Positions 11,311 to 61,241 of a stretch of 64,000 bases of DNA are shown here, in pieces. Within the stretch, counting starts at the first letter, position 1, and the number at the start of each line of letters is the position of its first letter. A model generated the notes under the pieces. That model saw nothing but the letters and a program-made list of their open reading frames with translations. It made no database searches and was not told the origin of the DNA. The position numbers and the translations under genes are program-made. The DNA is taken from the NCBI GenBank assembly GCA_047495785.1, contig JBLDXI010000015.1, positions 2,108,001 through 2,172,000 of the forward strand, written 5' to 3'. Source of the stretch: Lepidodermella squamata. Taxonomy: Eukaryota; Animalia; Gastrotricha.

Positions 11311-14300
11311 CGCCAATTTATTGTAGATTTATTGTAATAAGTGTTACTCCGCTCAACTGCATTTAGAGTGATTGATTTTTTTTGTATAAAGTCGAATATT
11401 TTTTTATAAACTATTTTATGCCACTGAACCACCGATGAAAATTAAATTGAAAAGAAAGAATGATGTTGGGAATAAAATCAAAATCGCTGGCGCTGCGAGC
11501 GACCTAATTTTGGACAAAAATGACCTTTTTGAACTAATGACTTTTGCGGTCGCGCCGGCGCGTGATTATTAGAGGAACACGCAGATCAGGTTGTTCCATT
11601 CGAGCGAAAGAAATCGCCGTCTGCTGCTCAAATTTCTAAAATCTCCAAGTTTTAAAATAGACACCGGGAGTGTTTGATTAGTCACTCGGTATAGACAGCG
11701 TGGCATGAATAAGCGTATGAGTCGGTGCGAATTATTCAGCCGGATGAGAGTATCAAAATTTAATTTGCCGCTATTTACAGCAGTATGAATCAGAGATAAT
11801 GTTTCAAAGTGGCGTGCTTTTTTCAAAAAATACTTTAACAGCAGAAGAAGAAGCAGATTTCGTGATTCAACATGAATGACTTCGCTTATTTTAGGAACGT
11901 ACCGAAATTTAATAACCCTTATTAGAGGAGAAAATTATAAAATTGTTGGGATATGTTTCAACCAAAAAATTCTCAATCATGATCAGTCGTAAAATTATGT
12001 GCCTTTTTACCTATATCCCTAATTATTTATTTTATGTAATGTTACCTCGAAGGTTAAACATTCGAATATCAAAATATCTGCGATTGATATTGAAATTTAA
12101 AGCGAACCTCCATTAAATTTTCGAATTTCATAAACTTTTCTTAAAAATCAAAATATGAGAGCGATGGCTAAGATTGGCACAGGTGATTCCTAACAAAAAA
12201 TCACGGCGATTGAGATGATTCTCGAGAGAAGCAATGAATCAAAATACGAAAATCGCCTATATGTCTACTCATCTAAAATAGTGAAACCATCATTAGTTTA
12301 ATGCTTCTCAAAATCAGACGAGATTTAGCTCTTTCGATGATTATTTAGAAAATTAGAATAGTTTGTTGAAAGATGTGCAAGGTGGAATTATGCGAATTAT
12401 TTTTGGGACAAAAAGCTTGATTGAGGTGTTTTCGAATTTAAGCGAATTTAATTTAATGGCAATTTTCTTGACAGTTTTTAAGCCTGCCCATGATTCATTT
12501 TGTGACTTCAATTGTGGTCGCGTGTTCATTTGGCATTCTTTCAAATTGCCACACCGTTGCTATTGCGCAATTTTTGTTATCAATTATTTGTGAAAAAAAC
12601 GTGACGCAAGAGGCGACCTCGTTTGTTCATGCTTTTTCAGCTTTACTTTTACTTCATTTTTTGACCTTTTTCTCTCAGAGCTCAGAGTGGTTGACTCAAT
12701 ATTCGACATAATGGTTTCGTTTGCTTATTCGTGGTCGTAAAAACGCTTCCAGGAAATCGATTCCAAGCGCGCACGAAGTGCACTGACCAGTCTAGAATGA
12801 TTGTTTTCCCGACAATAATGCGTCTTCCGGTGCGGCAAATTTTTATTGCAAATTTTTGCGCTACTGCTCGTATGTACAACACACAATCAAGGAATGCCGA
12901 TGATGACGGTGCACTCGCGCCTTTTCCGCTGCACGCTGCGGCCGCCAGTACCACTAAAATTCACTACCAGCCGTGGCGACATCGATTTCAACTATTGATG
13001 CGCTGTTTTCTATGGCATCGCGCGCTTGTTATCTATCCACTGTGCAATAAATTGGTTGCCAATCAATGGTACCTGCTGAATCATCATTCATGACAATTTG
13101 CCAATTTGTTAAGCCCATTTAATGATGACGACTACGTCTTTCATTGCGAGGATTTTTATTACCAGACCATGTGCGCAGATTTATTACTACTACCAGTGAC
13201 CCGAGGTCATAAGGCGTGTTTCTAGTGGCGAAATTATTGCTTAACCAGCCCTTATGAAACACGTGCGTCGTGTTTATTCGTCGTTTTCTTCCTCTTGATT
13301 TGTGTGTGTAATGTGTGGCATGCTCAAGTCAGCAGCTAATTTTAGCGATCAGCAAAACCGCAATTTTGCTTCGCTACAACAGATAATCAGGTGCAGCGTG
13401 CGCGTCGTGACGAAAATTAATCAAGCCAGTTTCACTCTCGCCTGTCGTAATTCGAACTACTTTTCATCATTTCATCATCATCATCGTCGTCGTCGTTAGC
13501 TGGTCAATAGAGCAGCATCTTCATTTCCTGTGTTTTCTTGCAACTCACCTTTAACGAAATTAAGATCGATTTTCAGCCCCCGCGATTGTTTGTTGCCTTG
13601 TTCTCACTTTAGCTTTTAGATCAGAGACGCAGCCTCAGTGCGTTTTTCAGCTCGCGCACGCGATCTGTGCCATTTTGCGCAACACGTGCTGCTGCTGCTG
13701 CTGCTGTCCAAAAACAACTCGCAAACAACAATAATGAAAAGTCCTGCTTAACAATCTACACTAGCCCGCCAAAAATTATTCCCTGATAAGATAAAACTCC
13801 ACGTTTGTCAGCTAAATGATCTTTTTATCGACAGATTTTTATCTGTGAAACACCACCTACGCGGCCTGCTTGGGTGTTGTTTGCATGAGTGGCCATCTCA
13901 ACCAGTCATAAAATCGCGTCATGGACTTTGTGCTTGGTGAAAACACGCCCGTTTTTTGTTAATTATTTTATGTTACGACCAGCTGAAGTTTTTTTAATCG
14001 CAGTTCTTGTTTCATGAACGACTGGGCGAGGCAGAAACACACACGTCCATTTGGTATTAGTACTCCCGCTCTATTCATCTAGGAACAATATAAAGTAGCA
14101 TAGAATATTCCCATAGAGACACAAATGCCGCGCTGCATTCAATATTTAAGTAAAATGCGGCGCCTCTTGGGTTTCTTTCCTCGTGCATGTCAATGCAAAT
14201 TTTCTTGCATTCATGAACTGGAAAAAATTGAGAATTTTGCCTTCTTTTTCTTCTAGTAGGCCTCAAGATTTTATCATACGTCATGCATTGTTAATTTTTT

Positions 14301-14333
14301 AACTAATATCGCCGCCTTTTGCATCATCGGAAA

Positions 14334-16202
14334 ATGAGCGTTGTTCAGCCGCCGCGGAAAAGGAAATGTTTCCTGTTGAAAAGTGGCGAGGTCGCCCCGG
14401 ATTCCCCGAGTTGCAGCGTCGAATCGGCGCCTGGCACGCCCCTCCCGCCAGCCCCGACGCCGCCGCCTCAAAGTAATTTGCCGCCGAAGCAGATCTCGCT
14501 GCCGGCTGACGAGGCGTTCGCTGCGTTCGTTCAAACCGCGCTCGAGTTGGCGTCGAAAAAAATCGACAAGGAACGCGCGTTGACGTTGCAACGCGACGCT
14601 TTACAGCTGAAGCTATCGCAGGCTGAGGAAAAATTGCGCCATTTTCAGATGCAAATCAGTGCACTAATGGCGAGCCCGTCGCCGTCGTTGTCGCCGAAAT
14701 CAGCCTCGCCGACGTCGACGACAACCATCGAGGAGCCAGTTGTTACTACTAATAAGCAGGAATCGTCGAAACTGGAACAGAAAAATCGCGAATTACAGCG
14801 TAACCTCGATTTAGTTCAGCGTGATTTAACGCAGTGTTCTAATTTACTGAAGAGTGCTCAATTCGACTGTTCGAAGAAGGACCAAAGATTAACCGATTAT
14901 TGCAAGGAGCTAGAAAAATTACGGGCTGAGCTGACGCAGACGCGCTCGCGATTAGACTCATTTGTTAAATCAGCGTCTGAACAGGCGATTTTGGCGAAAA
15001 ATTTACAGGAAGAGTTGAATGTGGAGAAAAGCGCGAGGCTGGACGTTGAAAGCAAGCTTCGAACTGCGAATGAGTGCGTTCGAGCCGGCATGCAATTAGA
15101 CGCTATGCTAGTTTCAATAACGGCGGAGAAGAACGAACTTGAGGCCGAGGTGGCTAGGCTGAAATCATCAGGTTCAACTTGTGCTACGAAAGCATCGTCA
15201 GCCTCGGAACAAACGACTCAGACCGATGAAGTTATTGCGAAGGAACGTTTCATCAAGAGGGATGAAGAGATCTCACGACTTCAGGACAAAATCGTCGGCC
15301 TTCACCGTCAATCACCGCTGGAGATCACCGGTCAAGATAGCCTCGCCTCGAAAAACACTTGTACGGAAAATTCGAATTTTTTTTAAGGAGGGTTTTTTAT
15401 TTTAATTTTTTCAGCGTCAGATTCGTCAACTGATTCTCCATCGCAGTTGCAATCGGAGAATGTGAGTTTGAAGCGACGGGTGGCCGAGTTGGAGGATGAG
15501 CTTCAACAACGGACCGAAACGATGGAGTGGCATCAGCGAACGTGGAATCAGAAGTGTGAGCAGTTGCGACTGCTCGAAGAACGGGTTCGCGATCGTGACA
15601 TTCAATGTGCCAAATATCACTATGAACTCGAGGTTTGTTTCAGAAAGCATAACACGCGTTTTAATGAGAAAAAAGTAGAACGCGCAAATAATCAATATTT
15701 TATCGAATATTCCAATTAGTCTCGGATTTTTTTCGAAAGACGAGCATTACGCTATGCTTTTTATCGCTCTTCCATGCAATTAATTATCTTTTGTTTTATC
15801 GTCTTGTTGATAAACGGACTCGATGTCTGACAATGGAAAAGTTGTTATACTTGCGTGGGTTACTAATTACTAGAATCTCCCGCCCGATAAAGCAATGTTT
15901 ATTATTCGCTTTTATTCAAGATATCGAAGTCCGGAAAGTACAACATGAGTGCTTTTGTGGAGCATTTTAAGCCGAGTAAATTGCCAAAATTAATTGATGA
16001 TATAATTATTGATTTTTGAATTTTATTTGTTTTATGAATTTTTTTTAATTATTTTTAGCTGGCTGAGCGGAAATTGCGATCATACCAGGAGCGCATGTCA
16101 ATCTCGTCGACATCATCCTCGCCAAGTTTGATGCACCAACACCACGACCGGGTGATCTGCGACCCCGTTCACCATCACTACCCGTCGCTAAGCGAATTTT
16201 GA
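14334..16202 (+). CDS. CC2: coiled-coil protein with Pro/Ser-rich N-terminus; exons 14334-15360, 15415-15632, 16059-16202
   Basis: AAAATG start; in-frame splicing at GT-AG sites; NLS-like PPRKRK. KCFLLKSGE resembles CC1 KYFVLRGGD. Confidence 0.8.
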
Positions 16203-16479
16203 GAATGGCAGAAATTTCATCGAGTTGAGGTGCGAGTCGGCGAAAATCATGATCAATGATCGCGTATTTATCATATGCATCGCTATTACTTATACAGGTC
16301 CTGTTGTATTAAAAAAACACAATAAATTATATTCTGAAAAATGATGCGATGAATGGAGGAAAAAACTGGATTATTTTGTGCCTGCTCCTTTATTAATATT
16401 GTTTTATTGAAACAGAAGATGCTGGAGAAAAATGGTCATTTTTATTTATTTATTTAGAATTTGAGGTCATCCTTAAAAA

Positions 16480-19400
16480 ATGATCGATTTAACTGAGGAA
16501 GATTCAGATTATCGGCAGAAAATGTTAGAAGCCGACATTCCGTTGAACATTATTGCAGAATGCGAATCGCGGCCGATTTTAGCCGAAATGTTGATTGTTT
16601 ACGCTAAGTCGCGTAAATCTTACGAAAATGAGTTGTTATCACTCGTCATCGACGTGAAAAAACGCGCTGAAAAGAAGCGATTTGAATGCGACAAGGAGAT
16701 GAGCCGCTGCGAAAATTACGTCCTCTCATCCCAAAATTCTGAAATCGAAGCCGATAAGCTGCGTCGGCAAATCGCGGATATGAAGGCGCACATCGAGACG
16801 CTCAGTTCCGATTTACTCGCGCGCAACTCGGAACTCGCCGATTTGGCGGGCGATAATCGCAAGTTGGCGGAGGATAAAGCCAAGGCTGAGGCGATGTCAC
16901 GCCGGCTTAAAGTCTCGTTGACGCAAACTGCAAGGGACCTGGCGGCTTTGCGGAGAAATGATTCGATCAGGGCGAAGACGCTGGCTCGCAGTGCTAAAAT
17001 GAGTCACTCGTTATGCCGTAGAAGGCTATGTAAGTTTCGGTAAATTTTCGGGTCCAAAGTCCAGCTTAATTTTGATTAATTCGAGATGCGAAATCTTCCT
17101 ATAATGGAAAGTTGAATCATTGAATGAAAAAGTTTAAAGTTGGGTTAAATATTCTGGAAAGTTCAAGGACATTTTTGTTAAAAGGCTTCCTGATATCTAA
17201 TACAGCTTGTCCCAGAAGTTGCCCGGCAAATTTTTTAAGAAAATTCAACTATTTTTGTTAAATTAAACCTACCGAGAGAAAACTCAAATTTTTACCCATG
17301 ATTTAACCGAAGAAATAAAAAATTTATCGGAGAATACCCGGAAACCGGAAAACCCCGATTGCAACCGGTTCGGTAATTGTCGGTATTTTACCCGGTTGGA
17401 ATCCCATTAACAATAAGTAACATTCTTGATTACTATGTTCGTTATTTTCGAATTTTTCTAAACTTTTACTTGCCATGAGATGTGACGTCTCTCATTTTTA
17501 GTTCATTTGAAGTTTCTGAACCATTTTCCGTGTATTTTCTGTGCTTGCATTATTTATGGGACACGCTGTGTTAGAATTGTTTTTACTTCAGTTAGTGCAG
17601 AGGTTGGTTCAGAATACGCAGACCCGATCCAACCCAAAAAGTGACCGAGGGACCGAATGAAGTAACCCTATATGACAGTAACCCACCTATCATTTTTATT
17701 TTTATTCCTTTTCATTGGACGTTTTTAAAAAAAAACACAACCGTGAACATGGTCGGATTAACCCTCCGGCTGCCCCTGGGCTTTTGGCGTTTGGCGGCCC
17801 CATTTTTTTGCAAATTTCAAGAAAAAACGAAAAAAAAATTATTTTTAATTTGACTTAAATGGGAGGTTAGAAAAACGTTTAGAAACGCTTCTTTCGACGT
17901 TTTCTGTCGACGAAAATGTCAATAATACGCTCAACATCCAATGACCTTAATATGTCGGATTCCAAGGCCAGAATCATTGGATTGTTCAGCTCGTCCTGGC
18001 CCGTCGATGATCTGAGATCGCCCTTAATTAAGGCCAATTTAGAGAAGCTGCATTCACCGCTCAATCCTCATTGATAGCTGAAAGGGCCTTTCGAAAAACT
18101 TTCGACGCTGGCGGCCCCTTTTGACTGGCTCCAGCCCTCCGAGCCAACGCGTTAATCCGGCCCTCTCTGTGAAGCAGTCATTTTATGTAAAAGACAAGTT
18201 CATTTCTTGAGACCTTGTCGGGCATCTTGTGCAACAAGAACCTCCGATTCAAAAGTTACTGGGTTCATTCCAGCCCGGTCTTTTCGGACAACTTTCCCTG
18301 CTAAAGAGAAGTGGCGTTCTGATTCGGATGGACACCCTTGAATAACGAGTAGTTAGTTACGCGGCAATTCGACTGGTTACAGGAAACAATCCGCTGTTTT
18401 TGCCCCGCCACTTTAGAGGGTAAAAAATGTCGCCTTCTGGAATTTCCACATCTAGCGCTTTGAATTTGACCAACTCAGAGTCGTAGTTTTGAGATTTTTA
18501 TTTACAGGATGAAAAACAAAAAGATGTTCATTCAGGTGTCCTAGAGTAACTTGGGCAATAACGTTGTCAAAGTTGAGCTTCCATTATTTCGTTAAGAACG
18601 TTGAACGAGGGCAGATCGCAGTTACCCAGAATGCGGATTGGTGTCTTTTAGGGCAGTGGCGAGCTTGGAAACAGAAGGCGCTTTCTTGACCGTCATCGAG
18701 TTCATCTTGAGTTTCGTCGAGCACGGGTAGATAATTGCCATTGCTAGGCATCATTTCGGTTGGTAGAACTTCCTAGAATAAATTACCGCATCGTTGCCAA
18801 CTTTTCAAGATTTTGGCACGTTCTGCTTGAAGCTGATCTCAAGCGTGAGAGCAAGAATACTGTCAACGATTTGATGATGCTTTCTCGGCCACGTTTTCCT
18901 GATCTTTTTCCTACGCCTTCATAAATTGCTCCGTATGGTAGCCATGGTGCCGAGGTAATTAGCCATGCCCCACCTCGGAGGCATCTTTTGGCGTCGGGAA
19001 ATTGGTGATCGCAGAGACTTCAGCAGGATCGGTAGAGATAGGGCCATTGCGACCCAGAATTCGCCCTAGAAATCGCACGGAGTAACAAAAGAGATTTGTC
19101 TTTTTATGATGTAACTTCAAACCGGATTTCCTGAGACGATTCAAAACCTCGCGACGGACCTGAATGTGTTTCTCGAAAGTCCTCGCGAAGATGTGAAGAT
19201 GTGACTTCGCCCTTGATCAAGTTAGGAATTACGTCGCGCTGAGCTCTGTTTAGCTCAACGGTGCCGAAAAACTCTGATTGAAAAATACATCGACTCCTAG
19301 TTTTATGAAGATTTAATATAATTCTTACCAAATCAGAACAGCTAATTTCTAAAATCATTATTTTTTCATCTTTATAGCAACTCAAGACGCCAAATATACC

Positions 19401-22400
19401 AGACTAAACTCGAAATTACAGCAAGAAATCAAAGAAATAACCCGCGACCGAGATTCTTGGCAACAAAAAGCTACATCGATACAGCGGAAATGTACCGGGT
19501 GCCGCGGGCTGAAAGAGCGCCTCGAAAAAGCCGAATTCGAAATCGATGTGAAAGATCGCATTGTTGAATCTCTGAAAATCGATCTCCGCCTCGCTGAAGA
19601 ATCGTCTACCGCTCATGATAGTAACCATTTTCGACCCATTTTTTTAAGTTGTTTTAATTTTCTCTTTTCCAGACGAAATTTGTGACCTTCGAACTAAACT
19701 AGCCTTGGAGGCGACAACTTCGGACAGAATCAAGTCTGAATTTCTGGCGAAAATTGAATTGATATCTCAGGAGCGAGATTCTCTACGATTCAGAATCGAT
19801 TCGATGAGTGCCGTCCAGTCTGACAGTGGGGCGCCTATATTCTGCCTCGACTGCCCTATCATCAAGTCTCGCCTTGAAGAGGCTAAACAGGTGAAATTCG
19901 GCAAAGTTTAAAAACAATTTTTTTCTAAATTTTTCTGATTTTAGAAATTGGCTGATCTTTCATCTGGAATTCAACCTCATCAAATCGATAGCGATGAAGT
20001 TTCGAAGCTGAAACAGGCCCTTGAAGACAAAAAATCTGAATTGGTTGAAGTCGAAAATAAATTAAATCAGATCATCTCCCAAAAACAGGACCTGGAATCC
20101 TGTTTATCCAGAGCTGAGTCCACAATTCGATCGAAGGACCTGGAAATTTCTGTCATGAAGAAGGCCTACGACCAGAAAAGGGCTGAATTAGCTGGTAAAC
20201 TCGAAGAGCTGGAGGGTAAATTAGAAAAATTCTTCAACCAACGAGAGGCGATGGTTAAGAAATTGGCAGATGCTGAAATTTTGATTGAGAAATTGCAAAA
20301 TTGCGGAAATTGTGGAACTCTGAACCAGCAACTTGATGATTGCAGAAGGTTATGTGATTCCATGAAAGGCGTCGTCAAAATGCTCAGTGAAAGGCTGGTC
20401 CAAAACGATTCATTGCTTCAAGAAAAATCTAGTAACAAACCTCAAAGATTCTCCATTTTTTGTTTTAATTTTTTTATTTGAAGGCAAACTGGCGGAACTT
20501 CAACAGCAATATACTGCGCTTCAGTCGAGCAGCTCTGAAAATTTGAGGTCGGAGATCGATAGTTTGAGGGAAAAGCTTCTTGATTGTGAAAATCTGATCA
20601 ATACAAAAGCTGGTAACATTTTTCTAATTATTCAATCAAAATCTTCAACGAAATGTATCAGCTGAATTTTCCGATCTTCAAAATCGTTTTGATGCTCTCA
20701 ATGCGAGACCTGCTAACTGCGAAAAGTGCGAGAATCTGAGTTCGCAGGTTGAAAAATTGAAGATAACTGAAGGTGTGGTTGACAAATTTGCCCAAAAAAA
20801 TAATCTGATTTCATTTTTGTATTCAAGAGAAAGTCGCCGATTTACAGTCCGCAAACAAAGCTCTTGCCGATGCTAAAACTGAGCTTGAGAAGGAACGAAA
20901 TGGTACTATTCAAACTCTGAAGGACAAAATCGCAGAAATGGAGGCTTCGGCCGAAAGTTGCGCGAAATTGCGGTTGGAAATCGATCGATTGAATGAAAAG
21001 CTGATTGCTCGTGATAACCTCGTCAACACCAAAACTGGTAACTATTTTGTCGGCATTTGGTCGACTTTGATTTGTTGGATTGCCCTAGCTGAATTGCTGG
21101 GGCTTCAAAATCGATTCGATGCACTCAATGCGAGACCTGCTAATTGTGAAAATTGCCATTACCTTCGCATGACAGTTGAAAATTTGAAGAAATCAGTCGC
21201 TGATTTGGAGGAATCTCTCGCCCAATCGAAGTCCGAAAAAGTAGCAGTGGACAAAGAGCTGGAATCTGCCGTAAAATTGTGCGGAGAGAAAGAGGCGGCG
21301 TATCTTTCAATGCGTGAAAAACTCGTCAATTGTCAACGTCTTTTCGAAGCTGAAGAAGGTAGGTAGAAAAGTTTCCAGGGAATCAGCTGAATTTCCCCAT
21401 TTTTCTAGAAAAAGTTGCCGATTTAAAATCTGCAAACGAAGCTCTTTCTGAAGCGAAATCAGAGCTGGAAAAGGATATGAATAGTACTGTTCAATCGCTG
21501 AAGCATAAAATCGCGGAAATCGAGGTTTCGCTGGCGGCCAAATCTGGTAAAAATTGCTTTTTTCCCCATCAATTATACGCTAATTACTTAATGATTCTCA
21601 GATGAAATCGAATCGTTGGTTGAAAGCCACAATAAATCATTCGAAAAATTCAAGCGGAAGAATGGAAGTCTCAAGAAATTGTTGTCTAAATTGACGGCGA
21701 AAAAGGCGAAACTGGAGCAGCAGATTGATCGCGCTCAGAAGATCTGCGAAAAGCGAGAATCGGCCAAAATTTCACTGCGAGCCAAACTGCTTTCCGCATT
21801 GAAAACTCGCCTGAAAACTGAATCAGGTATCATTTTTATCGCCTAAAAAAAGTTTATTTTATTTTCTCTGATTTACTAGTTCTTCATGACACTCTTCTCG
21901 CTGAGAAATCGGAAATGGCTGAGCAATTGCAGGAATCGGTGAAAATTACCGAAAAATTGAAAGAAAGAAATAGGACTCTGAAACAGCGAATTGTTGAACT
22001 GAAGTCCGATCTCGAGGCGAAAACAAGTAAATTAACAAAATTAATCGTAAATAAAACGATATATTATTACGTTTACAGATGAAATAACAGATCTTCAGGC
22101 GCGAGCCGAAAATCAACCCTGTGAAGATTGTGATCAGCTGCGCAATCAAGTATCGCAGTTGGTAAAATTGGCTCGCGATCGGAAAAAGCAGCTCAATAAT
22201 TTGGAAGCGGTAAAGGCGAAGCTCGACGAGAGAATTGGTAACTTAATTGCGATCACAACTTGTTAAGGTTTTCATTCTGATTTTTTTCAGTGGAACTGGA
22301 ATCGCAGGTCGAAGCGGCAAAATCTCAACCTGTCAGTTGCACAAATTGTGAAGCGCTTTATGCTACCATCGAAAAATTGGAAAAATCGAACGCGAAACAT

Positions 22401-22850: not shown

Positions 22851-23024
22851 TTGTATTTCAAAGTTTTGCATAATATAAGTTTACAGCCTTCAATCTAATT
22901 ATGTGATCCTGATATTGTGAAATTCAAAATTAATTATTCCGGAATAATAACTGCTTATATTTGTTGATAAAAACATTCCTCTTATTTTTTTAGATTTATT
23001 TATAATATGTGAAACTTCCTTGAA

Positions 23025-49574: not shown

Positions 49575-51146
49575 ATGGATGAAGATGAAATTCAGCTGTT
49601 AAATTGGCGGAAATTGAAAGCGTTGAACCTGCCCGGTGATTTGATTAGTCTACTCAACTTGGCCGATGAAAAGCTGGTCGAAACCCTCATCAGATACGTG
49701 GAATTACGCAATTTTTACGACAGCCGTGTTACCGAGGTTATGATTTCGAACCAGGAGAGGCTGAACGAAAGTCAAAAAGCCATTTCAGCGAAATCAGTCT
49801 GCGAAATCGAGGCGATAGTCGCTGCGAAAGACGCGAAAATCAAATCGTTAACCACCGAACTCGAATCATTCACGAAATCCTGGGTCTCTGAGCGGCAAGT
49901 TTTTGAAACTCTACTCGCGTCAAAAGATTCGATAATCAGTGATCAGGAGTCTAAAATTAATGCTTTAGCGAGTGAAGCTGAAAGTTGGCGGACAATTATT
50001 GCCGATAAAGATCGAGTTTTAACAGATTTTAATAGCCAATTATCCTCCTTAACACAAAATTCTTCATCAATCATCCAATCGCGTGATTCAACGATTTCTG
50101 ATCTGGCATCGAAAAATCAAGAATTGATGAGGCAGATTGAGCTGTCTGGCTCGCGTAATTCAAACCTCGTAGAAACTGTGAAAAATCTGGAAAAATTCAA
50201 CACGCAACTTAAGGAGGAACTCGGAAGAAGCCGGGAAAATATCGAAAATCTTCAATCTTCGATGGCGAAATCAATCGAAGAATTGAAATCGATAGTCAAT
50301 GAAAAAGATTCGCAAATTCAATCTCTTATGGCTGAAATCGAGAATTTATCTCGGAGTCTCAATTCAGACCGGCAGCAAATGGCCAGTCTCCAATCGAAAA
50401 TTAGCGTTGATCCCGTCGAATCCGGGAATTTCAGGGAAATATTAGCGGAAAAAGATCGCGTTATTGAAGATTCGAAACGAAAATTCGCAGCTTTTGAAGA
50501 AAATTCAGCGTTAATTATCGAGTCTCGGGATATTATTATATCGTCATTAGAGTCGAAAAACTCCACCCTTACCACTCGTGTTATGGAGCTCGAAAACGCG
50601 AAGGTGACAATGTGGGAAAAATATAACGAACAGGCGCAGAAATCGAAACATTTTGAGATGGAAAAGCATGCGTTGAAGGGTGAAAATTCAGCGTTATCCG
50701 ATCGAATTGCCGGGCTCAACCAGCTTAGTGTATCGAAAAATCTCGAAATTGCGAAATTGAACGAAAAAATCGGCGATTTATCGAAACAGAACGCGGCACT
50801 ATCGAAATCGATCGAAGAATTCGAGGCGAAATTGAAAGTTGGTGCCGATCACAGCAAATGCGAGGCGGAGATTGAGAAATTGAACGGTGTGATAACCAGC
50901 CTGCAGACGTCTATAAATCGTCAGAAGGCTGAGTTGAAGACTAGCCAGGATAATATTGAACGGCTGAATAATTCGACGCGAGAGTTCAACCCGGCGATGA
51001 AGCAGCAGTTGATTGAACACTTCGAGGCTCGGATTGCGCATTTGAACGCGGCGAACAACGCGATGCGGCTTGAAATGGACAGGCTGCAGCATATGTTGAT
51101 GCAGCGAGACCAGCCCGTCCGGCAGTATGGCCCCAGGCGCTTCTAA
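49575..51146 (+). CDS. CC12: 523-aa member with internal ~100-aa duplication
   Basis: Family N-domain; the segment IVxxKDxxIxSL...KDRV...IIxSRD occurs twice; C-terminus homologous to CC11. Confidence 0.85.
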   Translation: MDEDEIQLLNWRKLKALNLPGDLISLLNLADEKLVETLIRYVELRNFYDSRVTEVMISNQERLNESQKAISAKSVCEIEAIVAAKDAKIKSLTTELESFTKSWVSERQVFETLLASKDSIISDQESKINALASEAESWRTIIADKDRVLTDFNSQLSSLTQNSSSIIQSRDSTISDLASKNQELMRQIELSGSRNSNLVETVKNLEKFNTQLKEELGRSRENIENLQSSMAKSIEELKSIVNEKDSQIQSLMAEIENLSRSLNSDRQQMASLQSKISVDPVESGNFREILAEKDRVIEDSKRKFAAFEENSALIIESRDIIISSLESKNSTLTTRVMELENAKVTMWEKYNEQAQKSKHFEMEKHALKGENSALSDRIAGLNQLSVSKNLEIAKLNEKIGDLSKQNAALSKSIEEFEAKLKVGADHSKCEAEIEKLNGVITSLQTSINRQKAELKTSQDNIERLNNSTREFNPAMKQQLIEHFEARIAHLNAANNAMRLEMDRLQHMLMQRDQPVRQYGPRRF

Positions 51147-51351
51147 TTGTGCCTAAATTGAGGTAATGGCTTTATTACTAATTTTGTTATTTAACTATTT
51201 TTAAACAGTTTTTAAACGGAATTATTCATATGCCGGAGAAAAGTATTTGACGGCATTTATAGGGGTTTTAGGAGGTGTAAATCACGATTTTGGGTGGAAT
51301 TATTTTTGTATTTGGCGTCTTTTTATAGGAATTTCCACTATTTTTTCGTCA

Positions 51352-51626
51352 AATCTACCGAGAGAAAATGTCATCTCTTATCCAAGATTTAACCGTAGAA
51401 ATGAAAAATTCACCGGAAAAAACTCGATAAACCCCGATGGTAACTGGTTCGGTAATTTTCGGTATTTTACCCGGCTGGACCGAATTTCTTCGGACTTTTT
51501 TAATCCCATTAGAAGTGACATACTTGATTACTATTCTCGTGATTTTTTGAATTTTTATAAATTTTGTCTGGCCATGAGATGTGACTTCGCCTCGCATTTT
51601 AGAGTTTCTGAACCCTTTTCCGTGTA
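51352..51626 (+). repeat. Second copy of the dispersed repeat at 17265-17534
   Basis: Same colinear blocks, ending ttttccgtgta. Confidence 0.7.
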
Positions 51627-51839
51627 AGGTCACCCGGACGGAACGGCTCTGCGATTGATGTGGCGATTCCTCCAAGGGTGTGAGCGGCGGCGGTGAATAA
51701 CGGAAGTAGTCACATGTCACTCAAGCCGTACAAACAAAAGGCGCAGTCAATTATCAGCACCGTTTTTATTAGCTTGAAACCAGCGAAAAAACATTATACA
51801 CAGCGAAAATTCTAGAAGAAAAATTATTGTTTTTGGGTT

Positions 51840-52415
51840 AGAATATTGCGCGGCACCGAAATGACCGAAATGAGGCGGACCTTTGATCTTGGCGGGGCGG
51901 TATCTCGGCCGTGCACGATCGAAGTATCGACCGGCTGCACTGCCGGCTTTGTCCTAGTTTTAGCGGCGCGTTTCACAGCAATTTTCGTCGCATCGCCTCT
52001 TCGCTTTTTTGAATCTTTTCCGGCGATTTTTGGCGATTTTCGACATGAGCGAATTTAGCTGACGATGAAGGAGCAAAGGCGGCGAAGCCATTCATAAGAT
52101 CTGTGAAGCCATTTCTCTATAATATAAAATGGAAATTTAAAAAATTGAATACCTGAATCGACGTTTTGAAAACACTGGCCATGTTGACCGCATTGAGCAT
52201 ATTTGTAGTATCGGCGTCATGAGACAGATGTGGAAATTCGACCACTTTGCCAATCACTTTCTCTGTGCAGAAGAATGTTTAGTTCTCAGGGATCGGGAAT
52301 TCGATATGTCCCTCTTCTTTTAAAATTCGGTCAACCACCTCGCTGAACGTGCGGGTCTTTAGTCGATCGCCGTTCGACTTTCGCACAAAATGCCAGCCAG
52401 GTTGCTCTCAGCCAT
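51840..52415 (-). pseudogene. Two-exon minus-strand gene relic of unknown origin
   Basis: Coding-like frame (...WHFVRKSNGDRLKTRTFSEVVDRILKEEGHIEFPIPEN*TFFCTEKVIG...) with an internal stop, a GT-AG intron near 52120-52153, and a basic final exon. Confidence 0.35.
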
Positions 52416-53064
52416 TGCAAAAATGCAAATGCCAAGCAACGCGATGCAAAAGCAATGCAAAATTAAATCAAGCAGTTACCTAAATATTGAATAAGAAGTC
52501 GATTATTGAAGAAAAGATACGGAGCAAGAATTCAGAAAAAAATCTGTATAGTTATGAATGAATGAATGAATGAATCGTATCGATTTCCCACGGCTGACAC
52601 GCGCGAAATAATACGTGATAAATTTCCAATCCAGTGAAAATCGAAAGCCTTGCAAATTCAATTTATTACTCATTGTTATGGATTATTGTAGGCACCAATC
52701 GCGTATTCACATAAGCCAAAAGAAAGTATCAGCAAATAAACGAATATACCAACGTATGAAAATTTGAATGAAAAATTCTGATGGGAAATTTGGAATTTTG
52801 GAGAACTTCCGACTTGCGGTAGCGGAAGGTTTTACACTTTTTCCAGCCCTGATCGAACGGCACCGGATACGTTTTTGCCAGCTTTCTTGATTTCCTTATT
52901 GGCTAACAGCATGATATTTGATCGACCCCGAGATAGGGGTGGCGCTCACGCCAACATTATTCCAAACTGTTGGAAAAAATCAATGTTGGAAAGTCAAACC
53001 CATGATTTCGGCAAGTTGCAGAGGCAAGCCTTCATAATTCCGAAAATTCTAGATTTCGTTGCCA

Positions 53065-53776
53065 TTACCGGCATGATGGTCGATAATTTGTACTAAGATG
53101 GGTTTCCGTGCCTTTATTCATCTGATTAGGCCAAATTGTTGCAATCATTGCAGAGCCCAGACTGCCACCAAAGTCAAAGGCGCAAAGAAGTTGTCGCAAA
53201 TGATTCGCCGTGATTAGATCCATCAATTCGATACTGCTGTGAATTATTATGAATTCGAGTACTTTTTTAGCTGTTTTACTCAATGCCGGTTCAGAGATGA
53301 CCTTGCCATCATAAGGCGGTTGGCTAATTTAGGGAAAATTAGCCTAATTCGCCCTTCGCCAACCAGCTCGACATTCATTTGTTTGAACTTAGGCCAAGTT
53401 GAGTGTAGGATTAGTTCCAGTTCCGCATTTCGGCTTTCATTCGCTTCGTGATTTTGAGGCCGGGGAATCGCTTCGCCAGCAGCCGAGATAGGTCCTCTAT
53501 CAAATGGTTGATACAAAAGAAAATCAGTGTGAAACCAATCGGAATGAGTAGAGGTGAAACCGTCAGAAACCAAGAGCAGTTGCAGCCAAGGTACCGAATC
53601 ATCGTCATTTTTGTGAAGCCGAGAAGAGCATTGACCTCAGCAAAACAACAATCAATAGTGAGCGTACGAGGCAGCGGAACTGTCCGATTTTTGACCGGAA
53701 GGGCGGCTTTCAAAGCCTCCGGGGAGCTTTGAATTTGATGATTTTGCTGGTCGGATGAGAGCATGCCCGGTGGCAT
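53065..53776 (-). pseudogene. Frameshifted minus-strand ORF relic whose 5' end was co-duplicated with CC13/CC14
   Basis: Overlapping short ORFs in different frames; the first ~150 nt recur at ~55850-56095. Confidence 0.35.
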
Positions 53777-54333
53777 CCAAGGATAGGAATCATTCGAAAA
53801 TTGAAGAAAAATATTCTGATGACATTAATTTATCAATTTTTTAATTATTTACTTGATGGAAGATTTTCGCAACTTGAAATTTAATAACTATATGGTTTTT
53901 AGGTTCTGCTTTGCGGCTGAATCTTTCGGAAACTGGCACTTCTTACTCTTGTGCATACATCATACCAATGTGTTCAGGTGATCGAAATCAGCATGTATTT
54001 TATACTGAATAACAGCTTGATTGTTGTGTAACTGTATTTACCGAAAAACAAAAACAAATCAACTGGCGTGCAACTGCGACGAAACATGTGCCAGTTTAGC
54101 TGAGAACACTTATCACGATTTTCAGCGGAATTTTTTCTCTGCGGGAAACTGTAAAATATATTATTATTGTTTTTTCTTTGATTGTCGATTATTCTCGCCA
54201 TTTTTCTCTTTGCTGATCTTGGAATTAATAAATTTGGTATTTATGATTTATTTCCATTTAATGTTCTGAGACGATAGGTACGAGTAATTTTCATAATTTA
54301 ATTTCTATTTATAGGCGGGTTTTTTTCGTTAAA

Positions 54334-55611
54334 ATGACTGACGATAAAACTCAGCTGCGAAATGAAATAAATCTGATATCACTCGATTTACCGCCTGATT
54401 TGATGATCCTCATTGATACGTCCGACGTCGCCTTGGTGACCGCGCTGGTTAGCTTCATCGAAGAGAAAAATTCTTATCAAAGTCAACTAACCGAATCGCT
54501 GATCGCCTCCAAAGAAAAGGTCGAGGCGAGTCGAAGAATCATTGAAAAGCTTGTAGCGGACCTTAAATTAGCCGAAAATTCGATCGCGTCATTCAAATCA
54601 ATCCTGGAGCAGAAAGAAACAAAGATTAAATCGCTATTGGCTGAAATCGAATGTTTAACTCGGCAAAACGAATCGCAGTTGTCTCAAATCACTTTGAAAA
54701 ACGACATTATTTCCGATCAATTAACCAAACTCGCAAACTTATCGAAACAAGCTGAAAAACGCCGTAAAATCGATACTTCGATTGATTTAAATTCGGAATT
54801 GGTAGAAAAAATCGCATCTCTTGAGGTAGCTAACGACAGTCTTGAGCAGGATATCGCCGCCTCTCAGAAGAGAATTTCCGAGTTGGAACAGACCATAGCT
54901 ACTCAGCATCAAGTGTTTCATCGAATTTCATCCGAAGTGGAACGGCAGGCTGAGTTATTGACTGCAAAAGATGGCCAATTAGCGGCTTCGTTGCAGGATA
55001 AAGCGATTCTGGCTGGTCAGTTCAATCAATTGAAAGAGGAAAATTACGAGAAAAATCGGCTGATTTCAAAGCTGACCGACGACATAACGATATGGAAAAC
55101 GAAAAATAAAACTCTATTCGACCATGCCAGCGATTTGGAACAAGAGCTGAAACGCGTTGTGGCTATCAATTTCAGCGTCGCTGAAAATTGCCCAGAAAAA
55201 TCGCAACGTTTTAAGGCAAAACTGAAAGAAACGAAACGCGAGCTCAGGTCTAGCAATAGAGAACTGAGAAAAACTCGCTGTGAGCTGGCTGAATTTAAAC
55301 GAAATTTCGATAGATTGATGCATGAAGTTGCAATGAAAGATTCGATAATTGCTCAGATTGAACAAAGTCTGCTGTCTGTTGATGAAAAATGGAAGAAAAA
55401 TTGTGTTGACTTGATGTCGGAATCTCACCGTCTTGTTGATGAGTTGAAAGGCCAAGTTGCAGAAAAGGAAAAAATTACTGCTGATTTGAATTTTCGAATT
55501 TATGGGCTCAATTCGACAGTAGCCCGATTGCGAATGGAATTGAGCCGAACGGCTGAAGCGCTGATGGCCACGTCTTTTAATCGGCAAGGATCTAACAATA
55601 ATTACTGGTAA
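54334..55611 (+). CDS. CC13: ~425-aa member; recent duplicate of CC14
   Basis: Family N-domain; KRRK NLS-like motif; terminal intron 55608-55667 overlaps the last codons. Confidence 0.9.
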   Translation: MTDDKTQLRNEINLISLDLPPDLMILIDTSDVALVTALVSFIEEKNSYQSQLTESLIASKEKVEASRRIIEKLVADLKLAENSIASFKSILEQKETKIKSLLAEIECLTRQNESQLSQITLKNDIISDQLTKLANLSKQAEKRRKIDTSIDLNSELVEKIASLEVANDSLEQDIAASQKRISELEQTIATQHQVFHRISSEVERQAELLTAKDGQLAASLQDKAILAGQFNQLKEENYEKNRLISKLTDDITIWKTKNKTLFDHASDLEQELKRVVAINFSVAENCPEKSQRFKAKLKETKRELRSSNRELRKTRCELAEFKRNFDRLMHEVAMKDSIIAQIEQSLLSVDEKWKKNCVDLMSESHRLVDELKGQVAEKEKITADLNFRIYGLNSTVARLRMELSRTAEALMATSFNRQGSNNNYW

Positions 55612-56135
55612 ATTTTTTTGAAAATTTATAAAATTTATAATTTATGAAATTGTATTTTATTTTACAGATTGACATAGCTCTGGACCTTGCTGATAAACAA
55701 TTGACTGATATTAATATTTTTTGCTCTAATTTTTCATTCCAAACTCGTTGTCTTGTATGATTTTTCCAAACTCGATGAAATGGTTGTTATTGGTTATTTT
55801 TCATCCAATGGGATCTTTTTAATTGTTTTTAGGCTAATTTATTCAATTAATTTCAAACCTCCAGAGAGCTTTGAACCCGATGACTTTTGCTGGTTTGACG
55901 AGCGCATTTCGCCAAGTGGAACTAGCACCGTTTCGCCCACAGCATTTAGTCATTATTAGGACGTGATAAGAAACTCGCTGACCCGATTATCAGGTCGACC
56001 CGGCGAATTGCCCGGTGGCATCCAGGGATAGGAATCATTTGAAAATGTATATAAAATATGTTGATGATGCTAATTCATTATTTTTTTAATTATTTAATTT
56101 GTGCATCATTTTAGTCTGCAGCTTTAATAATATTG

Positions 56136-56657
56136 ACCGGAAACAAGTGAAAAGTGGGGTTAGGCGACATTTTTGACATTGTGAGATTTCGATGCCATTT
56201 TCAAGATCTATTAACGAGGAGTCGAACGGTATAAAAAAGGGCTGATGTTCATCAGGGTTGCTGAGAAAATGGGCTTATAAGTTTACGAGTGAAAAATGCA
56301 AATTTTGAAAAATGCGCCTTAAAAATTGAGTATATAATTGGATCAGTAAATAATCGTGGGCGCAATATTTTCTTCAGCACAGTCGACACTTCGCAGAGTA
56401 ATCTTAGGTGAGTAATCTCGCCAGATCTTGAAAAAATGTTGGGATCAAGCTAGTGTCTCTACGACAACCTGAATCGAGAACACGTGTTTTAAGGAGGATG
56501 GCAACATCCTAGAGGTCTGAAATTTGAAATCGTCAAAAAAACTGAGTGAGGACATCTTGTAATTCGAGAATCGTCCTAATTCGAGTGAACACACTTTTTG
56601 CGATTTGCTGGAAATTACAGAAAATTCGCGTAACCCCATTTTTCACTTGATTCCGGT
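56136..56657. mobile_element. MITE upstream of CC14 only
   Basis: Left end accggaaacaagtgaaaagtggggttaggcga vs reverse complement of right end accggaatcaagtgaaaaatggggttacgcga. Confidence 0.75.
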
Positions 56658-56743
56658 GACATTAGAAAACGGGAACTTCTTCGAAAACTTCACCCCAAAT
56701 TTAAAAAAAAATCCATTTTTTAGGTGGGTTTTTTTACGTTAAA

Positions 56744-57988
56744 ATGACTGACGATAAAACTCAGCTGCGAAATGAAATTAATCTGAGATCACTCGATTTG
56801 CCGCCTGATTTGATGTGCCTCATCGATACTTCCGACGGCGCCTTGGTAACCGCGTTGTTCCGTTTCATCGAAGAGAAAAATGCCTACCAAAGTCAACTAA
56901 CCAAAGCGCTGATTGCCTCTAAAGAAAAAGCCGAGGCGAGCGGAAAAATCATTGAAAAGCTCGTGACGGATCTGAAATCAGCCGAAAATTCGAACGCGTC
57001 ATTTAAATCAATTTTGGAGCAGAAAGAAACAAAGATTAAATCGCTATTGGCTGAAATGGAATGTTTAACTCGGCAAAACGAATCGCAGTTGTCTCAAATC
57101 GCTTCGAGGAATGAAATTATTTCCGATCAATTGACCAAAATCGAAAATTTATCGCAACAAGTTGGAAAACGCCGTAAAATTGAAACGTCGATGGATTTGA
57201 ACTCGGAATTGGTAGAGAAAATCGCATCACTTGAGGTAGATAACGACAATCTCGAACATGCGATTGCTTCATCTCAGAAGAAAATTAGCGATATGGAAAA
57301 AACAATTGCCACTCAGCATCAAGTTTACGAGCGAATTTCAAGCGTAGTGGAAATGCAGGCTGAATTATTGAGTGCGAAAGATGACCAATTATCGGCTTCG
57401 TTGCAGGAAAATGCGATTATGGCTGGTCAAATTTCGAAATTGACCGACGAAATAACGATATGGGAAACGAAAAATAAAACTCTGTTCGACCACGCCAACG
57501 ATTTGGAACGCGAGCTGAGACGCGTTGTGGCGATCAATTTCAGCGTCGCGGAAAATGTACCACAAAAATCGCTGCGTTTCAAGGCGAAACTGAAGGAAAC
57601 GAAACGCGAGCTCAGTTCCAGAAACAAAGAACTGAGAAAAATCCGCAAGGAGCACGCTGATTTAAAACAAAATTTCGATAGCTTGAAGCATCAAATTGAG
57701 GTGAAAGATTTGTTAATCGCTCAGATTGAACGCAGCCTGCTGTCTAAGGATAAAAAATGGGGGAAAACGTGTGATGACTTGATTAGCAAGCTGTTTGAAT
57801 CTCGCCGTCTCGTTGATGAATTGAAAAGCCATGTTGCGAAAAGAGAAACAAATATTGCTGATTTGAATTTTCGAATTTTGGGCCTCAATTCGACTATAGC
57901 CGGGCTGCGAATGGACTTGAGCCGAACGTCTGGGGCGCTACTTGCCACGTCTTTTAATTTGCAACAATCCAACAAAAATTACTGGTAA
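56744..57988 (+). CDS. CC14: ~414-aa member; recent duplicate of CC13
   Basis: Colinear and highly similar to CC13, with a 14-aa deletion and a small insertion; same terminal intron. Confidence 0.9.
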   Translation: MTDDKTQLRNEINLRSLDLPPDLMCLIDTSDGALVTALFRFIEEKNAYQSQLTKALIASKEKAEASGKIIEKLVTDLKSAENSNASFKSILEQKETKIKSLLAEMECLTRQNESQLSQIASRNEIISDQLTKIENLSQQVGKRRKIETSMDLNSELVEKIASLEVDNDNLEHAIASSQKKISDMEKTIATQHQVYERISSVVEMQAELLSAKDDQLSASLQENAIMAGQISKLTDEITIWETKNKTLFDHANDLERELRRVVAINFSVAENVPQKSLRFKAKLKETKRELSSRNKELRKIRKEHADLKQNFDSLKHQIEVKDLLIAQIERSLLSKDKKWGKTCDDLISKLFESRRLVDELKSHVAKRETNIADLNFRILGLNSTIAGLRMDLSRTSGALLATSFNLQQSNKNYW

Positions 57989-58239
57989 GAATTTTTCAAA
58001 GGTTTAGAAATATTTTTAAAATTTTTAATTGCGATAATTTTTCAATTAAATATTTTTATTTTTCAGATTTTCGAAAATCCGGACCTTGCTGACCAGACTG
58101 ATAATAATATTATTTGCTCTAATTTTTCGAGCTCGCTATCTTGCATGATTTTTTCCAAACTTTATGAAGTGATTGTTATTGGTTATTTTTGATCGGATAG
58201 GATCTTTTTAATTGTTTTTAGGCCATAATTTATTACGAA

Positions 58240-59417
58240 ATGATTGAAGATTTTCGAATCCAAAATTTGAACAAGCTTAAATCGCTGAATTTGCCAGCGG
58301 AATGGGTCAACATTATCAAACTGAATGATTCAGCCCTCGTCAACATGCTGGTTTCTTACGTTACAGAAAGGAATAACTACCAAAGCCAACTCGAAAATGC
58401 TCTCCTCTATACCAGGGCTACTCTCGAGAAAACTCGCGACTTGTTGGAAAATATGAAATCGAGTCAAGATTCAGAAATTGCGGAGAAAGATATGAAAATC
58501 CGATCCCTTTCCTCGCAAATAAACTGGGAACGGGAGAATTTTCAATCTCAATTATTAGCCAAAGATCGAATAATTTCCGAGCAAAAATCAAAAATTGAAA
58601 TATCGGCCGCTGAATTTCGTGAAACTTCTAGCAATCTTCTGGCGAAAATTACTTCCCTCGAATCGGAAAATATCGAAATGGAAAAGGAAATCAGCCGCCT
58701 TAATAGTCGAATTGCAGAGTTGGACAGCAAATCGGCGGCTCAAAATGAAGTTTTTCGCCGAATTTCGCAAGAATTTGAGCGATTATCCGTTGTTATTAAA
58801 GAACAGGACGAGCAAATTGACGCGTTATCGGCTGAAAAATTTGCGTTGAAAAACCAAAGCTATGAATTTGGTCGGCAACTGGCCGAAAAAAATCAGCAAA
58901 TTTCGGATTTGAGTGCTGAAATAGGAAAATTAAAGGCGAAAACAATTGGTTCTCAGGTTAAGAAAGTTGTCCCATTGCTACAGAGGATCGAATCGTTGGA
59001 AAAAGAACTGAAACACAGCGTCTCCAGCGCTAAATTACAGGAAAAAATCAAGCGATTGGAGCTGAAATTGAAAAATTTAGTAATCAAATCGAGAAAGCTG
59101 GAAAGTACGAATAAAGATCTTAAGAAGTCTGGAGATGAGCAGGAATTGAAAATTGCCAGCTTTTATCAAAGTAGCAACCGGCTGCAGGGCCAGATTGGCG
59201 AGCTGAACGGACGGCTAGCTGCGCAAATCAGCTATTATGAGCGGATTATTTCGGATTTGAAGTCGAATAATGGCTCGATGCAGGTCGAAATCGGCAAGTT
59301 GAGGGTGATGTTGATGCAGTGCCAACAGCAATTGATGCGATTTACTTCAGCCCAGAATGGTAAATTTTTTAATTCTTCGGAAATTTTTATTTTATCATTT
59401 TTTTAGGTCGCTGGTGA
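58240..59417 (+). CDS. CC15: member; exons 58240-59359, 59407-59417
   Basis: Family N-domain; phase-1 intron 59360-59406 gives the C-terminus QNGRW*. Confidence 0.85.
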
Positions 59418-59765
59418 ACTGAAATTTTATATCGAAATAGATTCTATATTTTCTGAAATTTTCGCCAATTAATCGATTGAGTGTCCATTTTACGTTGCAA
59501 GCCGCAAGGAAATGAAACCTATAATTAGCTACCTGTCCAGACTGAAATTTGACCCGCAACCTAAGCTTGCTGATCGATCATAATATCATGAGAGTTCCTT
59601 TATTCTTCGTCAAGTCTTTATCGTTTCTTTCTCCAATCCTCATAGGATCTCTCGTCTGCTTTCCTTTCATTGTTCTGGAATAAATTAATTGTTAATTGTT
59701 TTAAACTGGAGATAATTTTTCGTTAAAATTTAGTAAAAAAATTCTTATTAATTTTTCGGCAAAAA

Positions 59766-60685
59766 ATGGCGACCTTAATGCAACTAGATTTGCCAGTTTA
59801 TTTAAGGAAGCAAATCGATGAATCGAACCTGGAATTGGTTGATGCTTTAACGGCTTATGTTGAAACGCGGAATCGATTCGAATCCGATCTTACCAGTTTA
59901 CTCATTTCCACAAAAGCACGTCACAAGAAAGATGTCGAGCATATGCGGTGCTTGAACGAGGAGAAAAATTCGCAAATCGAAGCGATGAAATCGAAAATGC
60001 GAGATTTATCAAATGAAAACAGCCGCCTTAATGAGAAATTATCGGAATTGGAACGGTTTATTACGAGGAGGAATGCGGAAATGGATGAGGTGAGGCGAGA
60101 AAAATTCGAACTGGAAAATCGAATAGCGAATAATTCTGCCGAGCAAGTTGAAATCGATGTATTGAACTTGGATATCGAATCGTTGAAGAAATGCCGTGAG
60201 GAAGATCGCGCTAAATTCGCCGCTGAATGCGAAAAACTGCGAATAGTCATCAAAGACTTGAAAGTTCAAGTTAAAAATCGTGAAAATTCTATGATGGAAT
60301 TATCGCTAGAAAAGAAGGAATTGTCGAAAAAATTTCGGGATGAGAATGACAAGTTGAAGAAAGAAGTTGAAAACTTGAAGAAATTCAACGATCTTCGAGA
60401 GATGGTATCTCAAATTGAGGCTTTGAAAGAAATCAACGACCAGCAAGCCGATGAAATCAAACGAATGCGAGCTGCGTATTTCAACGAGCGCGTCAAAGCG
60501 GAAAAATCCAGGACGGAAATTCGGAAATTGGAAATCAAAAATAGCGGTAAAAATGGAAATTTTTGGGATTTTTTATTTTAATTTTCAATTTTTCAGATCT
60601 TACTCATGAAATCGTTTCTCTACGCTCTCGTTTATCTTTATGCGTCAACAAGCTGAGGCGATTTCTCCGTCAACCTCAAAATTAG
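59766..60685 (+). CDS. CC16: member; exons 59766-60547, 60597-60685
   Basis: LMQLDLPVYLRKQIDESNLELVDALTAYVETRNRFESDL; phase-1 intron gives DLTHEIVSLRSRLSLCVNKLRRFLRQPQN*. Confidence 0.8.
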
Positions 60686-60849
60686 AACGAATTCTTATCA
60701 TCTCGAAATTATTTTTTGTTGAAAATTCCTGTGCGTAATTCTTGTCGATTTTCGAACTGAACAAATACAACCTTATTTATGAAATCATATCAGTAAATTT
60801 ACGTGTTTTAACGAAGTGAGTTTTCATATTTTTTTAGATCTAGCTGTAA

Positions 60850-61241
60850 ATGCAGAATTTTAATGAAAAACTGTTGAAATCTGCCGATTTACCCGCGGAA
60901 TTGATTTCAAGCATCGATTTTCGAATTCGAAACTAGTACGGGCCGTTTTGGACTTTGCTTCGGGCAAAAAGCAGTTCGAAAAGGAATTGATCGGCCTATT
61001 GGTCCATCGGAAGCGGAAGATTGAAAGCCTCGAGGGTGAATTGTCGGAAATGAGGGCAAAATTGCGGCTATTTGAGGCGCAAAAGCACCAAATCGTGCTT
61101 TTGAATGAACAGCTGAGCCGGGCTCTTGATGACGCCGCCGATGCTAAGCAGGCCTTGCTGGAGCAGAAAGCTACTTTGTTATCCTATGTCGCTGCCAAGA
61201 AGAGTAGGCCTGATCTCGGAAATTTTCACACTGGAGCATAG
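60850..61241 (+). pseudogene. CC17: shortest, last member; 1-nt frameshift in a T run near 60918
   Basis: MQNFNEKLLKSADLPAELISSIDF continues as SNSKLVRAVLDFASGKKQFEKEL only if one T is added to gattttcg; pseudogene or homopolymer error. Confidence 0.7.

Follow-up and report, generated by a model that had tools for sequence, protein, structure and literature searches.

Candidate spliced-leader acceptors and short operon-like runs in a coiled-coil gene array of the gastrotrich Lepidodermella squamata

Sixteen related coiled-coil genes lie head to tail on one strand of a 64,000-nucleotide (nt) stretch of the Lepidodermella squamata genome, which is called the window here (C15:2108001-2172000, within a 121-Mb assembly; about 40% G+C). 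They span 46.6 kb (14250-60850) and belong to a longer series of coiled-coil genes, many of which consist of one long open reading frame (ORF), at approximately 10-61 kb of the window on the plus strand. T-rich TAG sites are found shortly before the start codons of these genes, and it is very likely that they are acceptors for spliced-leader (SL) trans-splicing. We infer leader use at these particular sites from three observations taken together: the acceptors occur beyond chance, the genome has SL RNA genes, and leaders are found fused to dispersed sequences elsewhere in it. With less assurance, though still as the reading we consider most probable, we infer that closely spaced neighbours are transcribed jointly and form short operon-like runs that are resolved by SL trans-splicing.

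A preliminary description of this DNA, made from the letters alone, had pointed to a T-rich tract plus AG ahead of twelve start codons (AG at 16457, 22993, 26508, 32360, 35599, 41696, 48356, 49555, 54314, 56723, 58221 and 60837). At all twelve a T-rich tract runs into TAG, and a long ORF opens with its ATG 11-31 nt further on. Two further acceptors can be added, at 46186 (70 nt before ATG 46257) and at 59733 (32 nt before ATG 59766). Under a strict rule, which demands at least six T within the nine nt preceding NAG and looks 8-35 nt upstream of the ATG, an acceptor is present at 10 of 15 family start codons. The corresponding share is 6.0% when all 716 ATGs in the region are counted and 4.6% for positions taken at random (binomial P 1.4e-9). 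The nucleotide at position −3 is T in 14 of 14 scored acceptors, while the same is true for 28-34% of T-rich NAG sites on this strand, and the distance to the ATG is 11-32 nt in 13 of the 14. It is true that the gaps are AT-rich and that T-rich NAG occurs about twice per kb on this strand. Nevertheless, the P value, the uniform TAG and the narrow spacing make it hardly credible that these AGs are a functionless by-product of AT-rich untranslated sequence.

The genes, called by their start positions, and their acceptors are as follows (UTR, untranslated region; X1, a cDNA run):
14334-16202, plus strand: coiled-coil gene, head of run 1; ORF, terminal exon, without a match to the N-terminal profile of the family; stop as modelled in the preliminary description.
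16457-22850, plus strand: family gene, multi-exon coiled coil; TAG acceptor 16457, ATG 16480, stop 22850; preceding gap 277 nt, with AATAAA at 16321.
22993-26392, plus strand: family gene; acceptor 22993, ATG 23025, stop 26392; preceding gap 174 nt, with AATAAT at 22943.
26475-32235, plus strand: family gene; acceptors 26475 and 26508, ATG 26525, stop 32235; preceding gap 132 nt.
32360-33005, plus strand: family gene; acceptor 32360, ATG 32379; preceding gap 143 nt, with AATAAA at 32329 (31 nt to the AG).
34530-35393, plus strand: family gene, head of run 2, behind a 1.5-kb gap; weaker acceptor candidates at 34485 and 34522.
35599-36705, plus strand: family gene; acceptor 35599, ATG 35611; preceding gap 217 nt, with AATAAA at 35576 (23 nt to the AG).
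41696-42800, plus strand: family gene; acceptor 41696, ATG 41712; the upstream stop claimed at 41542 is unsupported.
46186-47378, plus strand: family gene; acceptor 46186, ATG 46257; predicted 3'UTR intron 47389-47449.
48356-49297, plus strand: family gene, head of a two-gene run; acceptor 48356, ATG 48380.
49555-51146, plus strand: family gene; acceptor 49555, ATG 49575; preceding gap 277 nt, with AATAAT at 49534 (21 nt to the AG).
54314-55611, plus strand: family gene; acceptor 54314, ATG 54334; expressed in X1.
56723-57986, plus strand: family gene, head of run 5; acceptor 56723, ATG 56744; RNA-supported intron 57985-58066; 3'UTR to at least 58152.
58221-59417, plus strand: family gene; acceptor 58221, ATG 58240; predicted terminal intron 59360-59406; preceding gap 251 nt.
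59733-60685, plus strand: family gene; acceptor 59733, ATG 59766, stop 60685; RNA-supported intron 60546-60595; mRNA contig to at least 60811; AATAAA at 59679 (54 nt to the AG).
60837-61241, plus strand: family gene; acceptor 60837, ATG 60850; one-base frame shift in a T run near 60915.

The leaders themselves are encoded elsewhere in the genome. Every ribosomal DNA (rDNA) spacer contains, beside the 5S rRNA, two SL RNA genes of about 95 nt each, SLa and SLb:
Spacer locus L001, 1783-1875 and 2243-2344, minus strand: SL RNA genes in rDNA spacer sequence next to 5S rRNA.

Both leader exons begin with ATATCTGCG and extend for 30-31 nt to an AG, after which a GT donor follows. An unpaired U-rich Sm-like site (AAUUUGAG or AUUUUAG) precedes the terminal 3' hairpin in both; the fold z-scores are not significant. 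Approximately 540 copies of each leader exon are present in the genome. We fetched 60 of these loci for their context, and most are rDNA genes. At about 27 of the 60, the exact leader exon stands between unrelated flanks and is directly followed by a short AT-rich 5'UTR, an ATG and an ORF. No SL intron comes after the leader in these dispersed copies, and one element was found with either leader. Judged by this structure, the dispersed copies are DNA retro-copies of trans-spliced RNAs. Since the leader is fused to a 5'UTR and an ORF in them, both leaders appear to be spliced onto RNAs. On this DNA-level evidence, which is independent of RNA sequencing, SL trans-splicing exists in this genome. 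Neither leader is present in the 64-kb window, and therefore any leader would have to arrive in trans. The finding of both leaders on copies of one retro-element argues against a strict SL2-like specialisation of either.

Whole-genome search with the Rfam SL1 model (RF00198) gave no match; control genomes were equally silent, hence this result is uninformative. A metagenome scan with the SLb leader returned 0 matches, and our literature search found no paper on SL trans-splicing in gastrotrichs. Several observations on the SL loci can be added. Retro-element families have the exact SLa or SLb leader as their 5' end (dispersed copies among L007-L066); in several of these elements GGAGACG comes directly after the leader, and others have an ORF with an '…AEEFA-LN-LI…' motif. 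An element of approximately 25 nt (ccacatgcacRtggtcattggcgac) precedes both the 5S gene and the gene downstream of the second SL element, and this shared element is perhaps a common small-RNA promoter.

Regarding the spacing of the genes, ten short stop-to-start gaps had been proposed in the preliminary description, and nine of them stand, all between same-strand genes and 132-348 nt long. The tenth requires a stop at 41542, which depends on a guessed micro-exon about 4.8 kb past the end of ORF 35611-36705 and could not be supported. The stop at 60685 is borne out by RNA, as follows. Contigs of two sequencing runs were compared over 54950-60900, that is, around acceptors 56723, 58221, 59733 and 60837. 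Run X2 has even depth and a 130-kb record and is therefore a DNA run, and X1 contains GT..AG joints lacking in X2 and is therefore a cDNA run. In X1, gene 56744 has an 82-nt intron (57985-58066) overlapping its stop codon, and gene 59766 has a 50-nt intron (60546-60595) which shifts its stop to 60685. The contig with this second intron removed can be followed to at least 60811, 26 nt short of AG 60837, and for gene 56744 the spliced mRNA extends to at least 58152, 69 nt short of AG 58221; in these two cases the upstream 3'UTR ends no more than 26 and 69 nt before the next acceptor. X1 contigs are present within all three tight gaps of this interval, including 59417-59766. In five tight gaps a poly(A)-like signal is located 21-54 nt before the acceptor (AATAAA at 32329, 35576 and 59679; AATAAT at 22943 and 49534). 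A tight gap is essentially a 3'UTR, a short spacer, an acceptor and a 5'UTR of 11-32 nt. As the upstream 3'UTR nearly fills the tight gaps, there is little or no room for a promoter, and TATA[AT]A is found in none of the nine.

A different arrangement is seen at gene 10090, a family-like gene outside the runs: TATAAAA is located 84 nt before its ATG (window 10006-10090), and there is no T-rich AG. This gene may be a conventionally started relative that is not trans-spliced.

We propose that trans-splicing would use the T-rich TAG before each ATG as its 3' splice site. Pre-mRNA lying 5' of the TAG would be discarded, and a capped leader of 30-31 nt from a separate SL RNA would be joined in its place. 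Neighbours 132-348 nt apart would be transcribed jointly from a promoter ahead of the first gene, and each cistron would be freed when the transcript of the upstream gene is cleaved and polyadenylated at its 3' end, some tens of nt ahead of the next acceptor, in a process coupled to trans-splicing.

The preliminary description had already suggested an operon resolved by SL trans-splicing. The orphan acceptors beyond chance and the two SL RNAs encoded in the genome speak for this, and several observations weigh on the other side. No leader was seen at acceptors 56723, 58221, 59733 and 60837 among the 10 of 26 X1 loose ends listed; contigs assembled from words of 31 letters come apart wherever they reach a shared leader of 30 nt. 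There is no X1 record that bridges two genes among those listed, and contigs cannot prove a single transcript in any case. The RNA contigs inspected represent only about 6 kb of the array. Canonical AATAAA occurs in just four tight gaps, and TATA-less promoters could sit in the upstream 3'UTR or coding region. In nematode hybrid operons, internal promoters are located within the upstream gene. In the main rival explanation, the acceptors would be SL sites, each gene would have its own promoter in the gap or in the upstream gene, and the array would be a tandem cluster in which monocistronic, leader-spliced genes are densely packed. In C. elegans most SL1 genes are of this monocistronic type. 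Trans-splicing alone accounts for the orphan acceptors, the listed X1 records include none that bridges two genes, and contig depth differs strongly within a run (e.g. 58240 as compared to 59766), although contig depth is a poor measure. We regard this explanation as possible but clearly the less probable one. The upstream mRNAs reach 26 and 69 nt from the next acceptor and the poly(A) signals lie 21-54 nt before acceptors, and therefore a promoter would have to sit inside the upstream transcription unit; the tight gaps are also devoid of TATA-like elements. We accordingly retain the operon-like runs as our preferred reading of the array.

It is improbable that the acceptors simply end ordinary cis introns of the 5'UTR, with a short non-coding first exon and a transcription start of its own in each gap. 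A GTAA[GAT] donor is found 45-104 nt upstream of acceptors 48356, 49555 and 60837, and introns of 45-60 nt are normal in this genome. However, such donors occur 40-120 nt upstream of only 3 of 14 acceptors, which equals the background of 19-23%, and three tight gaps have no donor-like site at all, even of the looser form GT[AG]A[GAT]. The earlier statement that the acceptors have no obvious partner donor is thus upheld, and cis-splicing of the 5'UTR is disfavoured because the donor frequency is that of chance. X1 has no cis joint ending at 58221, 59733 or 60837, though two other cis joints are present in it, and the gap interiors are taken up by upstream 3'UTR. Even less probable is the notion that the whole of 14250-60850 is a single polycistronic unit, as the preliminary description implied. 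In its favour, all the genes share one strand with no convincing minus-strand gene among them, and the wide gap 55611-56744 was formerly tight and received insertions later. Against this stand six gaps of 1-5 kb, at least three of them with transposon or repeat copies, and, as a weak point, X1 has no depth in the unique parts of 55611-56744. To our knowledge, there is no animal operon of 16 genes over 46 kb. The single-operon claim is not borne out, and the array consists of about five runs split by 1-5-kb gaps.

The six neighbour pairs that are 1-5 kb apart (33005-34530, 36705-41712, 42800-46257, 47378-48380, 51146-54334 and 55611-56744) had gone unmentioned in the preliminary description. 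Four tight runs of 2-5 genes can probably be delimited: 14334 to 32379, 34530-35611, 48380-49575 and 56744 to 60850. Genes 41712, 46257 and 54334 are apart from the tight runs, behind wide gaps. At least three wide gaps (36705-41712, 51146-54334 and 55611-56744) hold repeat or transposon insertions, neither strand being assigned to them:
38668-39008: element resembling a miniature inverted-repeat transposable element (MITE-like), about 335 bp long, multi-copy and with inverted termini; located in the 5-kb gap 36705-41712.
51294-51626: multi-copy element of about 330 bp; inside the 3.2-kb gap 51146-54334.
52231-52851: copies 98-99% identical to other loci; inside the 3.2-kb gap 51146-54334.
55843-56717: insertion of about 870 nt between two tandem duplicate units; X2 (DNA) depth up to 875.
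56132-56667: dispersed repeat within the insertion 55843-56717.

At the start of gap 55611-56744, behind gene 54334, the tight gap downstream of gene 56744 is found in a second copy, together with its acceptor (near 55832, no longer used); this wide gap, at least, was therefore once tight. The segment 37885-40143, which is split in the window by the MITE-like element 38668-39008, has an inverted copy about 240 kb further along the contig (C15:2389365-2391054), with identity from 95% down to 70%.

Contig depth in the RNA data cannot reveal precursor RNA, and holes in depth prove nothing. Zero X1 depth in 55611-56744 was for a time taken as proof of non-transcription, and this was dropped: the hole also covers the 3' end of the expressed gene 54334. 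X1 has many fold-backs. A 111-nt X1 loose end at 59774 was considered as an upstream exon and rejected as a library chimera, as 25 nt at its junction are absent from the window and from the genome; its end is the reverse complement of an apparent SMART-type primer for cDNA amplification. Two more loose ends, at 58066 and 58152, were rejected as leader candidates, being the gene's own spliced exon and a fold-back.

The recent duplications of the array have limits of a particular kind. For 54308-55843 against 56717-58234, the duplicated unit opens 6 nt ahead of its own AG and runs on for 13 nt past the AG of the next gene, and the duplicate 26086-26481 against 31962-32366 ends 6 nt after the next AG. 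Identity falls abruptly beyond these limits, and both recent analysable duplications are bounded at acceptors, which suggests unequal exchange between T-rich acceptor tracts. It is a tentative possibility, and one we would not put forward as likely, that the family grows inside operons by unequal exchange that copies a unit from one acceptor to just past the next. The new copy would then be a complete promoterless cistron, expressed at once via trans-splicing.

Gene 26525 has two acceptors 33 nt apart, and the one at 26475 is the homologue of the acceptor of gene 32379, a relic of duplication. The interior of this gene (27900-31900) is non-homologous to its paralogue 23025. These two paralogues, 23025 and 26525, share a conserved minimal upstream ORF (ATG TGA) within their short 5'UTRs (23006-23011 and 26518-26523).

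Fifteen array genes have an N-terminal motif of about 45 residues in common (alignment A1). A profile of this motif gives 16 matches in the whole genome, and every one is in this window on the plus strand. Among 1.84 billion protein representatives the profile has a single weak match, P0001 (E 4.8e-6). Its source contig (Logan, 1021 nt) comes from another organism and has 36% identity to this genome; it was rejected as evidence on 5' ends, as just 4 nt precede the ATG and the organism is a different one. A word-indexed protein search with gene 41712 found no homologue, a search for the exact product of gene 58240 found no match, and Pfam, a PDB profile search and the protein atlas gave generic coiled-coil noise only for the family. 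These searches used single exons or ORFs; the joined reading of gene 59766 was used solely to place its stop codon. By these searches the family appears nearly orphan, almost without relatives elsewhere.

Short introns of 46-82 nt occur at or just past the stop codon in many paralogues. Those at 57985-58066 and 60546-60595 are RNA-supported, and those at 47389-47449, 51163-51208, 55608-55667 and 59360-59406 are predicted; splicing in gene 56744 changes the stop from TAA to TGA with loss of the last residue. Gene 60850 closes the series of family members and is possibly a recent pseudogene, though its 5' end has cDNA cover. Its frame shift follows 'LISSIDF', and neither X1 nor X2 shows an insertion or deletion there. 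Elsewhere in the window there is an intronless gene (569-2992, minus strand; 807 aa) that resembles family-C G-protein-coupled receptors, with an ANF_receptor domain; a TAG acceptor of its own lies 21 nt ahead of the ATG. Scanning the window with Rfam gave two tRNA genes (5171-5242, minus strand; 7460-7531, plus strand) and nothing else.

The runs described here have likenesses to three known systems and do not coincide with any of them. Nematode SL operons (those of C. elegans, the SL1-type operons included) are alike in having same-strand genes, an orphan U-rich acceptor near the ATG and an upstream poly(A) signal shortly before the acceptor. They differ in the acceptor itself, which is TTTTTAG here and TTTTCAG in nematodes, and the spacing from poly(A) signal to acceptor looks shorter here, 21-54 nt as compared to approximately 100 nt. 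Moreover, both leaders are found here on copies of one element, whereas the nematode type has a downstream-specialised SL2-like leader. Tunicate operons (Ciona, Oikopleura) occur in compact genomes, with a single leader class and very short or absent intercistronic spacers. Compactness and very short spacers are common to them and to the present array, as is, apparently, a single class of leader use, but tunicate operons consist mostly of unrelated housekeeping genes, while here a lineage-restricted family is arranged with gaps of 132-348 nt that are largely 3'UTR. In kinetoplastids the leader is added at the AG of a pyrimidine tract, coupled to upstream polyadenylation, and the polycistrons routinely contain tandem paralogue arrays. 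The likeness in this case is the head-to-tail order of paralogues along a single strand, with a pyrimidine tract and AG ahead of each. Kinetoplastids, however, are protists whose polycistrons, found genome-wide, comprise dozens to hundreds of genes, and in which cis introns are almost absent; here we have an animal genome with ordinary cis introns, and some genes are apparently of the TATA type (gene 10090). The SL and duplication context of kinetoplastids has been treated previously (PMC2212663).

The preliminary description contrasted this array with described operons, which it held to be usually mixtures of unrelated genes. As a general rule this goes too far, since paralogue operons or arrays occur elsewhere, the kinetoplastid arrays among them, and the C. 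elegans genes gpd-2 and gpd-3 are paralogues as well. These two adjoin in one operon (PMC11753634, PMC3820814). For C. elegans the contrast has some basis, as PMC2739200 (citing Cavalcanti 2006, Lercher 2003) states that operon genes have reduced duplicability. The runs in L. squamata, in contrast, consist of paralogues only.

SL trans-splicing and operons are patchily distributed among animals and their origin is debated, and a further phylum with two rDNA-linked leaders is a data point in this respect. What is particular to this locus is that the operon-like runs consist of young paralogues only and that duplication units begin and end at acceptors. The cassette model, if true, would make operons a nursery for a new gene family, turning round the nematode rule that genes in operons seldom duplicate. 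Should joint transcription be confirmed, the array would offer a natural test of how gene duplication is tolerated, or even favoured, in operons, as opposed to the situation in C. elegans.

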